Assembly (NCBI GenBank): GCA_039096225.1
Contig: JBBPEB010000003.1
Location: 806,001 to 870,000, forward strand
Origin: Blastocystis sp. Blastoise
Taxonomy: Eukaryota; Protista; Bigyra: Opalinata
Direction of reading: 5' to 3'
Length of the DNA stretch: 64,000 bases
Of this stretch, positions 48,817-52,277 are shown piece by piece. The notes below the pieces were generated by a model. That model saw nothing but the letters and a program-made list of their open reading frames with translations, was not told where the DNA came from and made no database searches. Every line of letters starts with the position of its first letter. Position 1 is the stretch's first letter. The translations under genes were made by a program, and so were the position numbers.

Positions 48817-50668
48817 TTATTGAATTATTTCTAGAGTACCTTGAGTTCCATCTAATCTAACTTTCATTCCTGTAGTAACTTTATTTAATAGTCCATGTAT
48901 ATTAACAACACAAGGAATACCCATTTCTCTAGCTACAATAGAACCATGAGTAAGAGGACCACCTATAGAAATAGCAACACCAGAAACATTAAGAAATAAA
49001 GGAGTCCAACCAGGATCTGTAGCAGGAGCAATAAGAATGTCACCTGCTTCAAGAACACAATGATGAGGGTCTGTAACGACAACAGCTTTTCCTTCTACTA
49101 TTCCTGATGACGTTGGAATGCCTAGTAATATATTACTAGGTAATGATAATAGCTTTTGTTTGGATACATTTGATTGGCTAATAAATGCTGAATATGGACT
49201 TAAAATGCAACGAGGAGGTGTGATTGTTTTGGATACTAAATAAGATTGTTTACGTTTTTGAATTAAAGGTATATATGTAGAGAAAGAAGAAGAATTCTTT
49301 TCAATTTCACATAACTCTGTTAGTGTTAAATAGAATATATCTTCTTTTTCTTGAAGTAGAGATTGTTGAATATATGATTTTGCTATTTTTAAAATAGCTT
49401 TTCTTTGAGCATCAACAATAGATATACATATATATTTATGATGTTCACGATAAGCATAAAGAAGTCTAGCTACAGGCAAATAATATTGAATACTAGAAAC
49501 AGCTTCAGGAGGAAGTCTTGAATATAACTATATTTATTAATTGTTATAGAAGAAGTAAAATAGTAATTATTATTTTAGTAGTAGTAGTAGTATTTTAATA
49601 ATAATAAATATAATAAATATAATAAATAAAATAATAATATATATATATATAAATCTTGTAAATGTTGTTCAGATTGTTGTTTTTTCTGTTCGGGTGATAA
49701 TAATGAATTAGAGTCCGTTTGAATAGAAAGAAGAAGAGATATAAATGTTGATGGAGTATCATCGTATCTAGGTGCTGCTATATCTAATTCATTATTACCT
49801 CTTCTACCAAATCGATCCATAAATTGAATCCAATAAGAATAAAATTCATTTATAGTTGTATTCGAAGAGGTAGAGAGTGAAGATATATATGTATATATAT
49901 CATCTTCATCACCTTTATCAGCAAGGGACTAAAGAAAAATATATATATATTCATGTTATAAATATATTCACGAAATATAAAGATTATTGTTTATAAAACT
50001 AAATAATACACAAATTATATAATTAATATAAAACTACACATTAAACAAAAGCAATAGTGACTATATATATACTTTTAATTTAGGAATAAAATCAGAATTA
50101 AATTTATTAATATTATTTATATATATAGCTAATCTTCCTATTTCATAATCCATATGAATTGATAAGTTTTCTAATTGTCCACTCATAATGACATCTAAAT
50201 TATAATTATGAATACTATTCGATTCTAATATTTTTTTAATTTTCTTTTCACAAAAAGAAGCTATAATAAAATAAGGTCTTGTAATCTTTAGCATTTCAGG
50301 AAATGTAATAGGATATTTATATAATTCATTTAAAGTAGTAGTAGTAGTAGTAGAAGAAGAAGAAGAAGAAGAAGAAATAGATTTAAAAGAATAAGGTTGA
50401 CGAAGAGGTTGTAATAATTTATTAATATCATTTATATATACATTTAGTTCTGACTGAATATCATTACAAATACGTGAAGGATTAAAGAATATAAAATAAT
50501 TATATATAATCTTATAGAGAACATAAGGTATAAAATGAGAATAACATTTTAACATAGGAAGAATAGACACAGAAGAAGAAAAAGACGAGTGACTAAAATC
50601 ATTTATATACCATTCTTGCATAATCTATATATATATAGATAGATAGATATTATCAATATATAATAATG

Positions 50669-50732
<64 letters not shown>

Positions 50733-52277
50733 TATATATAGTTATATATATATATATATATACAGAATCCATTTCTTGATCTACATTCTTAAACATATTA
50801 AAAAATAATTTTCGAGTAATAGATAATTTCATCATAGGTGCTATATCCATATACATATAATTATTAATATTCAATATATAAGTATGACTGTCCATGAGTA
50901 AATGGTTAATAGTAGAGAAACCACAAGGAGTAAAGGGTAATAATGACATTTGAATATGATGTATGCTAATACAACAACGATAAGTAGGAATAAAAGAAGA
51001 AGATAATGGATTTATTACTATAAGATATATATAATATAATAGTAATATTAATAATTATATAATTAATAATAGTATAAATAATAATAATAAATATATATAA
51101 TAATAATAATAATAATATATATACATATCATGAAAACACCTATATATATATATACCATCCGGAATATCAAATAATGTAGTTATTGGTCTTGCTTGTAATA
51201 TATATATAATATTATTATATATAGCAAATTCAATATCCATTGGTTTCTTATAATAATTCTCTATTTTTAAACCAATAGTACATATAGAGTAAATCTATAT
51301 ATATATAGAAAATAAACCATATATATATAATTATAAAAAGCTATATATAACTATCAGCAATAATATAAATATATTCAAACACAAATATATATATATATAC
51401 TTGTTGATTACTAAAGCAAGCATTCATTCCATCTTTTCCTAAATATTGCCTTTCTATTCCACCATCTTCTTTAGTATATAGCCCATATTCTTGAGTTCCT
51501 ATATGTTTTTCAACAATTTTTAATTCATTTATTCCATTTTCTTTTGGGAAATGTTTTCTTATAGTCCAATGATCTGTTTCTACTTGACCACTTACTAATG
51601 CTTCACCTTGTCCAAAAACACCATCTAAAGACATATGTTCTCGAGAACTTGTTGATGGATCACAAGTAAATAAAACACCTGATTGATCTGATGGAATCAT
51701 TTCTTGTATAATAACAGCTAATGATATATTAGTTATTAATTCATAATGATTTTCATATCGATACATTAAGGCACGAGGAGAATATAAAGAAACATAACAT
51801 TTTAAAATAGCTTGTGAAACTGATTCTATTGTAGTAGGAATATTAAGTAAAGTTTCATACATTCCTGCAAATGAATTATTCTCTAGATCTTCAGAAGGTG
51901 ATGAAGAACGTACAGAAACAAAATGACATTCCTTTAATTTAGAAAGAGATGCAGATAATGATGACAAAAAGGAGTCACCTAATTGTTCACAAAGAATTGA
52001 CTTTGTTATGGTATCACTCAGTTTTTGAGCATCCTCAAACTTCATATCAACGTTAAAACTCAAATCTAATTCGTGTTTAGCGAAAAATGAAGATATAAAA
52101 CCATCAAATGTTGTCGTTGGAATAATAAATGCCTTTGGAACAGGAATATCAGCTGAAACCAACTTTATTAGAGACGATCCCTTTCCTCCATATAACAAAA
52201 TAGATGGATCTTCCAATATGTCATTAATCTAGATGATAATAGTCATTATTTTTAGAATATACAAATGGAAACATCAT
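48817..52277 (-). CDS. Rifampin phosphotransferase (RPH)-like PEP-utilising family enzyme (ATP-grasp / substrate-binding / swivel phospho-His), ~924 aa, 7 exons
   Basis: Motifs GGKGSSL, VSVRSSSPSEDLENNSFAGMYET, AVIIQEMI, GVLFT.DP, GQGEALVSG and DIEFA...ILQARPITT. The middle region has FMDRFGRRGNNELDIAAPRY and AYREHHKY; the C-terminus has TDPGWTPLF..GGPLTHGSIVAREMGIPCVV. Introns at 52229-52262, 51295-51400, 51018-51155, 50625-50763, 49929-50072 and about 49528-49652. Exons sum to 2775 nt. Confidence 0.85.

Follow-up and report, generated by a model that had tools for sequence, protein, structure and literature searches.

A probable Blastocystis-wide, intron-bearing dikinase family with rifampin phosphotransferase architecture

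The best-matching solved relative of the gene described here is the rifampin phosphotransferase (RPH) of Listeria (RPH-Lm), for which the roles of individual residues have been assigned and a validated clade A of homologs with more than 42% identity has been delimited (PMC4844700). For the more distant clades, Stogios et al. predicted that phosphotransfer is kept and the substrate changed, and one distant-clade homolog gave no rifampin (RIF) resistance (PMC4844700). Here, we compare this system with a gene of the tortoise isolate Blastocystis sp. Blastoise. The gene is contained in a stretch of 64,000 nucleotides (nt), termed the window, which covers positions 806,001 to 870,000 of contig JBBPEB010000003.1 (assembly GCA_039096225.1). 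We consider it likely, at a probability of roughly 0.7, that the window gene is a member of a Blastocystis-wide, intron-bearing dikinase family that has RPH architecture (PRK06241-type) and probably acts on a substrate other than rifampin.

The window gene runs on the minus strand from 52277 to 48817, where translation reveals seven open blocks linked by six introns. It is already public but unnamed. Its annotated counterpart, KAK8814292.1 (P0001, 867 amino acids (aa)), is titled 'hypothetical protein WA158_008154 [Blastocystis sp. Blastoise]' and is 98% identical to the last-exon query in an exhaustive HMMER search. The exons were searched singly, and this public protein served as the full-length proxy in searches and modelling. 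Mapping of P0001 placed introns 2-5 exactly, and the junction of exons 1 and 2 (MMFPF, then INDIL) agrees between the translation and the P0001 N-terminus. The sole difference between the public model and the seven-exon model is the last intron. In the model that follows the conserved family structure, the spliced product comprises about 923 aa, and its features are arranged as follows.

52263 to 52277, minus strand: exon 1, MMFPF, with the ATG at 52277-52275; same as the N-terminus of annotated P0001
52229 to 52262, minus strand: intron 1, 34 nt, GT..AG, phase 0; position homologous to paralog intron 1
51401 to 52228, minus strand: exon 2, ATP-grasp domain (PPDK_N); Lys22 equivalent at 52183-52181
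51295 to 51400, minus strand: intron 2, 106 nt, GT..AG, phase 0
51156 to 51294, minus strand: exon 3, end of the ATP-grasp domain (QARPITTL)
51018 to 51155, minus strand: intron 3, 138 nt, GT..AG, phase 1
50764 to 51017, minus strand: exon 4, 'arm 1' of the middle domain; Gln337 equivalent at 50952-50950 (HIQM)
50625 to 50763, minus strand: intron 4, 139 nt, GT..AG, phase 0; a 30-nt intron stands here in the metagenomic Blastocystis contig L012
50073 to 50624, minus strand: exon 5, helical middle domain and a Ser/Thr-rich low-complexity loop
49929 to 50072, minus strand: intron 5, 144 nt, GT..AG, phase 0
49656 to 49928, minus strand: exon 6, 91 aa when the conserved structure is followed; in the public annotation, the exon stops at 49799
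49528 to 49655, minus strand: intron 6, phase 0, in the position conserved across the family; starts GA, ends AG
48817 to 49527, minus strand: exon 7 and stop, coding 49527-48820, stop 48819-48817; end of the middle domain and swivel domain

Within exon 7, the YREHHKY motif occupies 49452-49432 (equivalent to Arg666/Glu667/Lys670), and the codon of the phospho-histidine lies at 48948-48946. The composition of the gene is host-like (about 22-25% GC), the GC content being about 20-25% for the window, gene included. The host contig is eukaryotic, measures 1.33 Mb, and carries a split protein-kinase gene downstream. An intron-bearing gene of seven exons had been claimed in a preliminary description of the window, and this claim is confirmed by the open blocks, the domains, the motifs and the annotated protein P0001. 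The six introns, described there as host-style, are indeed spliceosomal, in keeping with the host-like composition and the eukaryotic contig. One probable RNA run contained 57% of the sampled sequence words. As the exons cover about 75% of the stretch, this match hints only weakly at a spliced transcript. A protein collection held no near-identical fragments among transcript-derived open reading frames spanning the last junction.

Structurally, the product follows the order of RPH, with an ATP-grasp domain at the N-terminus, then a helical middle domain and lastly a C-terminal swivel domain bearing the phospho-histidine. Pfam places PPDK_N (PF01326) in exons 2 and 3 (E-values of 1e-51 for exon 2 and 6e-67 for P0001) and the PEP-utilizers mobile domain (PF00391) in exon 7 (4e-21; residues 791-861/867 of P0001). 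The stop codon follows six codons past the swivel domain, and no phosphoenolpyruvate (PEP)/pyruvate barrel was found by Pfam behind it. The middle domain is homologous to the RIF-binding domain, with HIQM and YREHHKY aligned to the block-1 Gln and the block-9 Arg-Glu...Lys, respectively. All of the motifs quoted in the preliminary description were located in the translated exons, namely SIHHIQMSLLPFTPCGFS in exon 4, FMDRFGRRGNNELDIAAPRY in exon 6, and YREHHKY and THGSIVARE in exon 7. Among the NCBIfam models, pieces of the gene match PRK06241-type 'PEP synthase', RPH and PigC, and the closest relative in the PDB at both ends of the protein is the Listeria enzyme 5FBS/5HV1 (5e-33 and 5e-40).

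An AlphaFold model of P0001 reached a predicted local distance difference test score (pLDDT) of 84 and a predicted template modelling score (pTM) of 0.77. The model is helical in the exon-5 region, and loop residues 491-504 are of low confidence. Against full-length RPH-Lm, the model gave a Foldseek E-value of 2e-46 and a template modelling (TM) score of up to 0.67, with 5HV1-5HV3 matched. Pfam, the RPH-Lm alignment and Foldseek together bear out the domain order, and with it the assignment to the RPH type rather than to the PEP synthase or pyruvate phosphate dikinase (PPDK) architecture, as Pfam found no PEP-utilizers_C barrel.

To compare individual residues, the roles established for RPH-Lm (PMC4844700) were carried over to the numbering of Bacillus RPH and from there into the family alignment. 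In RPH-Lm numbering, the window gene keeps the ATP residues Lys22, Arg117, Thr136 and Glu297, together with Gln337, Arg666, Glu667 and Lys670, which handle the phosphate in the second half-reaction, and the phospho-histidine equivalent to His825. The rifampin contacts present a different picture. While Bacillus RPH shares 9 of 11 with RPH-Lm, none of the 11 is identical in the window gene, as listed below.

RPH-Lm Gln336: Ile in the window gene
RPH-Lm Tyr351: Ile in the window gene
RPH-Lm Thr354: Leu in the window gene
RPH-Lm Pro356: His in the window gene
RPH-Lm Ala357: Thr in the window gene
RPH-Lm Met359: Ile in the window gene
RPH-Lm Val368: Met in the window gene
RPH-Lm Leu387: Phe in the window gene
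RPH-Lm Leu478: Met in the window gene
RPH-Lm Phe479: Leu in the window gene
RPH-Lm Met673: Cys in the window gene

The rifampin pocket is therefore not conserved in this alignment-based mapping. Identity to Bacillus RPH (P0230) amounts to 28% overall and 18% in the middle domain. The curated NCBIfam models point in the same direction: the RIF_Ptrans_rph equivalog NF041857 gives 381 bits, below its cut-off of 999, NF000283 scores 249 against 1700, and the best curated model, NF004878, reaches 469 bits against a cut-off of 945. An antibiotic-inactivating role had been considered in the preliminary description. In its strict form, the gene would be a bacterial rifampin phosphotransferase that was acquired recently and serves to inactivate rifamycins in the gut, a reading that we regard as highly improbable. 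Such a role would agree with RPH-Lm as the best PDB match and with the conserved phosphate-handling residues, and since RPH-Lm binds RIF mainly through hydrophobic contacts (PMC4844700), the pocket could tolerate some substitutions. Yet every rifampin contact is replaced, the identity values fall well short of the 42% that bounds clade A, NF041857 is missed by a wide margin, the distant-clade homolog studied by Stogios et al. conferred no RIF resistance (PMC4844700), and the family is old and spread over 13 loci, as set out below. Since the rifampin-binding residues are absent while the catalytic residues are present, the window protein is predicted to be an ATP-dependent small-molecule dikinase whose substrate is probably another small molecule and not a rifamycin.

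A scan of the genome (33.3 Mb, 34 contigs) with the last exon as query identified 13 family loci, twelve of them 50-55% identical to the last exon and one 35%. Exons were mapped for the 10 paralogs with annotated proteins. In all of these, even in the most divergent one on contig C25, the 7-8 intron positions of the family recur with their phases and are shared with the window gene, as listed here.

Paralog intron 1: after about aa 6, phase 0
Paralog intron 2: after about aa 288, phase 0
Paralog intron 3: after about aa 334, phase 1
Paralog intron 4: after about aa 420, phase 0
Paralog intron 5: after about aa 587, phase 0
Paralog intron 6: after about aa 640, phase 2, missing in some copies
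Paralog intron 7: after about aa 680, phase 0

A first exon of 6-8 aa followed by a 35-47-nt intron is found in 8 of the 10 mapped paralogs, and P0151 and P0160 have extra N-terminal exons upstream of the first-exon junction. The last exon measures 235-244 aa in nine of the 10; in P0002, the intron preceding it has been lost. Mean identity among the tortoise paralogs is 68% in the ATP-grasp domain and 80% in the swivel domain, compared to 38% in the middle domain. The rifampin-contact positions likewise vary from paralog to paralog. As the pocket residues differ between copies, the paralogs probably differ in substrate, and with a substrate domain that is the most variable part of the protein, the family can reasonably be considered a candidate for a role in handling small molecules in the gut.

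Several paralogs show individual peculiarities. P0002 (L013, C32:134300-140500) and P0151 (L015, C32:87400-93600) are near-identical and separated by about 42 kb. Positions 3, 4 and 7 are occupied by introns of 45, 42 and 37 nt in L015, and L013 reads through all three, a pattern that suggests a recent loss of introns from one of the duplicates. The most divergent paralog, P0075 (L024, C25:760400-766700), keeps the family introns, the ATP-grasp domain and the phospho-histidine. The equivalents of Gln337, Arg666, Glu667, Lys670 and Thr136 are no longer present, and its block reads LSQHHLH, not YREHPKY; judged by these residues, P0075 may be a pseudo-enzyme, or its second half-reaction may have changed. 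P0160 (L016, C1:313700-319900) carries about 190 extra N-terminal residues with a SAP domain (PF02037), encoded by three extra upstream exons, and this extension may reflect either a genuine fusion or two genes merged in the annotation. Furthermore, P0003 (L018, C19:69600-75900; 613 aa) and P0163 (L017, C19:123400-129700; 685 aa) appear N-terminally truncated, and the family profile gave no full ATP-grasp match at either locus.

Homologs are also present in B. hominis subtype 7 (ST7; XP_012894720.1, which clusters with P0012) and in many gut-metagenome contigs. In one of the latter (L012, 36% GC), the homolog is adjoined by a eukaryotic Mo25 gene and is interrupted by a GT..AG intron of exactly 30 nt, at the same position and in the same phase as intron 4 of the window gene. 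An intron length of 30 nt is a hallmark of the Blastocystis subtypes of mammals and birds (PMC12129017). Beyond the gene itself, the window and the L012 contig share no synteny. The ATP-grasp exon of this homolog contains an in-frame stop at L012:3821-3823 (..LSEE*GKTP..), where the relative P0007 has Gly; the stop could be a sequencing error, a pseudogene mutation or a polymorphism.

In an unrooted tree of 41 rows and 888 columns (IQ-TREE, LG+C20 with posterior mean site frequencies (PMSF); supports are given as ultrafast bootstrap (UFBoot)/SH-like approximate likelihood ratio test (SH-aLRT)), all Blastocystis sequences are monophyletic (100/100). They are set apart from 27 prokaryote-type sequences, to which they are about 30% identical, by a stem of about 1.46 changes per site. 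The window gene groups with six tortoise paralogs (98/95) as the sister to the other six (100/98), which on this tree makes it the apparent earliest-branching copy of a tortoise-specific expansion. The sequences from other Blastocystis form a second group (86/80), and the copy on contig C25 has a long branch and an unstable placement. A further tree was built from the 150 best representatives for the last exon, drawn from the exhaustive HMMER search of 1.84 billion representatives. Here, only Blastocystis-type rows fall inside the clade, and the named sequences outside it are all bacterial or archaeal (Bacillota, Hyphomicrobiales, Actinomycetota, Methanosarcina). Neighbor clusters in the ESM Atlas are 94-98% bacterial. 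A search with the middle domain only matched the tortoise paralogs alone, within a reach limited by the word filter, and a scan of bacterial genomes, dependent on two peptide patterns, yielded weak and scattered relatives (27% identity at best) that are uninformative on the donor.

Because the nearest relatives outside Blastocystis are prokaryotic, a bacterial ancestry of the family is plausible, and to this extent the bacterial-type origin proposed in the preliminary description stands. The remainder of that proposal, a recent horizontal acquisition of a single gene that was then domesticated, was not borne out: the gene branches within a clade that is vertically inherited at the scale of the genus, there are 13 loci, and the introns are conserved across the 10 mapped paralogs. 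Given the presence of the family in other Blastocystis lineages and the shared introns, any transfer predates the split between the tortoise and the mammal/bird lineages. Alternatively, no bacterial transfer into the Blastocystis lineage took place, and the family is eukaryotic, of old vertical descent and shared with YvkC-like genes of animals or other protists. The long stem without an identifiable donor clade would suit such a history, as would the fully conserved introns, the host-like composition and the arthropod genomes with genes annotated as PEP synthase or YvkC-like (by annotation only). It is nevertheless quite improbable in view of a clade that holds only Blastocystis-type sequences in so exhaustive a search, of named outside sequences that are bacterial or archaeal without exception, and of the bacterial predominance in the ESM Atlas clusters.

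The last intron of the window gene deviates from the family pattern. Throughout the interval 49655-49528, both GT and GC are absent. The expected start of intron 6 reads GATTTATAT, resembling the usual GTATTTATAT minus one T. The public model instead places its last intron at 49798-49503 (296 nt, GT..GAAG) and joins ...FMDRFGRR to AVSSIQ..., which removes 56 conserved residues, 48 of them as exon-6 codons. These 48 codons contain the family-wide GxxELDxxxPRY block and are all open, for which the chance probability is about 0.015 at window composition. Exon 6 (91 aa) aligns ungapped to a single exon, 588-683, of paralog P0162 (E-value 7e-15) and to the GxRxxGEIDxxxxRW block of Bacillus RPH. The acceptor at 49528/49527 (ATAG|TTA) matches the last intron of the paralogs in position and phase (9 of 10 mapped). 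All 66 introns of the 10 mapped copies are GT..AG; 55 of them end in ATAG and none in GAAG. The P0162 alignment, the open conserved codons, the acceptor position and the lack of GAAG ends favor the exon 6/7 structure of the preliminary description, and the public gene model probably deletes the 56 conserved residues to avoid a non-GT donor. For the GA donor itself, either the assembly has lost one T, or splicing is non-canonical, or the donor has been lost and cryptic sites are used.

Several observations weigh against our interpretation of the window gene and its family. The GA donor may mean that the window copy is mis-spliced or decaying. A precomputed Pfam match to Rph_4th (PF27448), present in the paralogs, is absent from the annotated P0001. 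The terminal branch of the window copy measures 0.82, versus 0.09-0.5 for the remaining six copies in the tortoise expansion. In addition, the tree is unrooted, its named rows come from Blastocystis and prokaryotes with most outgroup rows unnamed, and it points to no direction and no donor for any transfer.

Taken further, the splice anomaly would imply that the window copy is a decaying or non-functional paralog, in which loss of the donor forces cryptic splicing and cripples the middle domain. A GA start with neither GT nor GC in the interval fits this scenario, as do the cryptic GT and the GAAG acceptor of the public model, an end seen in 0 of 66 family introns. The models of this genome favor introns supported by RNA sequencing (PMC12129017), no other of the seven copies in the tortoise expansion has so long a branch, and the 56 lost residues include the GxxELDxxxPRY block, which corresponds to arm 2 and the start of the apex. 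Weighed together with the opposing evidence, decay is unlikely, albeit worth serious consideration. All seven exons are open and the catalytic residues are intact at about 44% identity to the paralogs, which argues for long purifying selection, and the 48 'deleted' codons remain open and conserved. A one-base assembly error (GTATTT read as GATTT) explains the donor equally well, and the isoform with the 56-residue deletion folds confidently in silico.

Returning to the window gene as an RPH-architecture dikinase, we postulate a reaction cycle by analogy with the solved Listeria enzyme. The swivel-domain histidine would take the β-phosphate of ATP, with release of AMP and inorganic phosphate (Pi). 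The swivel domain would then dock onto the helical middle domain, where the Arg-Glu...Lys block and the Gln would position the phosphate for transfer to a hydroxyl of the bound small molecule. Regarding its history, the bacterial-type family would have entered the Blastocystis lineage, or already been in it, before the tortoise and mammal/bird lineages split. Its introns would have been acquired by the time of this split, followed by multiplication to 13 loci in the Blastoise strain.

Horizontal transfer into Blastocystis is well documented, and the finding does not open a long-standing question. It does present a bacterial-type family that is fully 'eukaryotised' and expanded in a tortoise isolate, and in which the RPH-like name of the family parts from rifampin inactivation as its function, the phosphotransfer machinery being kept and the ligand pocket diverged. 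In the searchable literature, we found no description of an RPH-like family in Blastocystis, and the main text of the 2025 Blastocystis genome paper (PMC12129017) does not mention it. It is conceivable, if rather unlikely, that the 13 loci constitute a eukaryotic 'phosphorylation detox battery' that inactivates diverse microbial antibiotics or plant phenolics through phosphorylation driven by ATP. If true, a herbivore-gut protist would thereby parallel the bacterial antibiotic kinases and the aromatic-hydroxyl dikinases.

Among the known systems for comparison, the homolog of B. hominis ST7 is annotated as a 'PEP-utilising enzyme mobile domain-containing protein' (XP_012894720.1/CBK20672.2). 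It belongs to the same Blastocystis clade but to the sister subclade of mammal/bird type, its last exon shows about 41% identity, and its annotated length is only 556 aa. Among the predicted secreted ST7 proteins, Table S4 of Denoeud 2011 (PMC3129679) lists a 'Phosphoenolpyruvate synthase', GSBLHT00000617001, which may belong to the family. PpsA and PPDK share the ATP-grasp and swivel phospho-histidine modules and the dikinase chemistry from ATP to AMP and Pi. In contrast to the window protein, which ends after the swivel domain, they carry the histidine domain centrally and a PEP/pyruvate TIM barrel at the C-terminus, and the PpsA models match the ATP-grasp and swivel parts only. PigC/RedH and the acetovanillone dikinase HpeHI (PDB 9GOJ) resemble the window protein in ATP-grasp homology and in the phosphorylation or activation of small organic molecules. 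The scores for PigC/RedH, however, remain far below the cut-offs (NF052631, 287 vs 1300; NF052632, 241 vs 1350), and HpeHI is a two-subunit enzyme.

The non-RPH 'phosphoenolpyruvate synthase' proteins of the PRK06241 group, from Bacillota and other prokaryotes, include MFW5976611.1 (P0027), the top bacterial match of paralog P0002 (404 bits). With them, the family shares NF004878 as top curated model, the HIQ (not HQQ) motif, a REHPKY-type block and the arm 1 insertion. The two differ in that the NF004878 score is about half of the 945 cut-off, identity is about 29%, and a long stem lies between them. RPH-Lm itself (5FBS/5FBT/5FBU, 5HV1; PMC4844700) is matched in domain order, in nine catalytic residue equivalents and in the full-length fold. 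It is unlike the window protein in overall sequence (24-28% identity; 24-25% in the Foldseek alignment), in the substrate domain (about 18%) and in the rifampin contacts (0/11), and the window gene, in turn, is eukaryotic, interrupted by six introns, and one of a 13-locus family.

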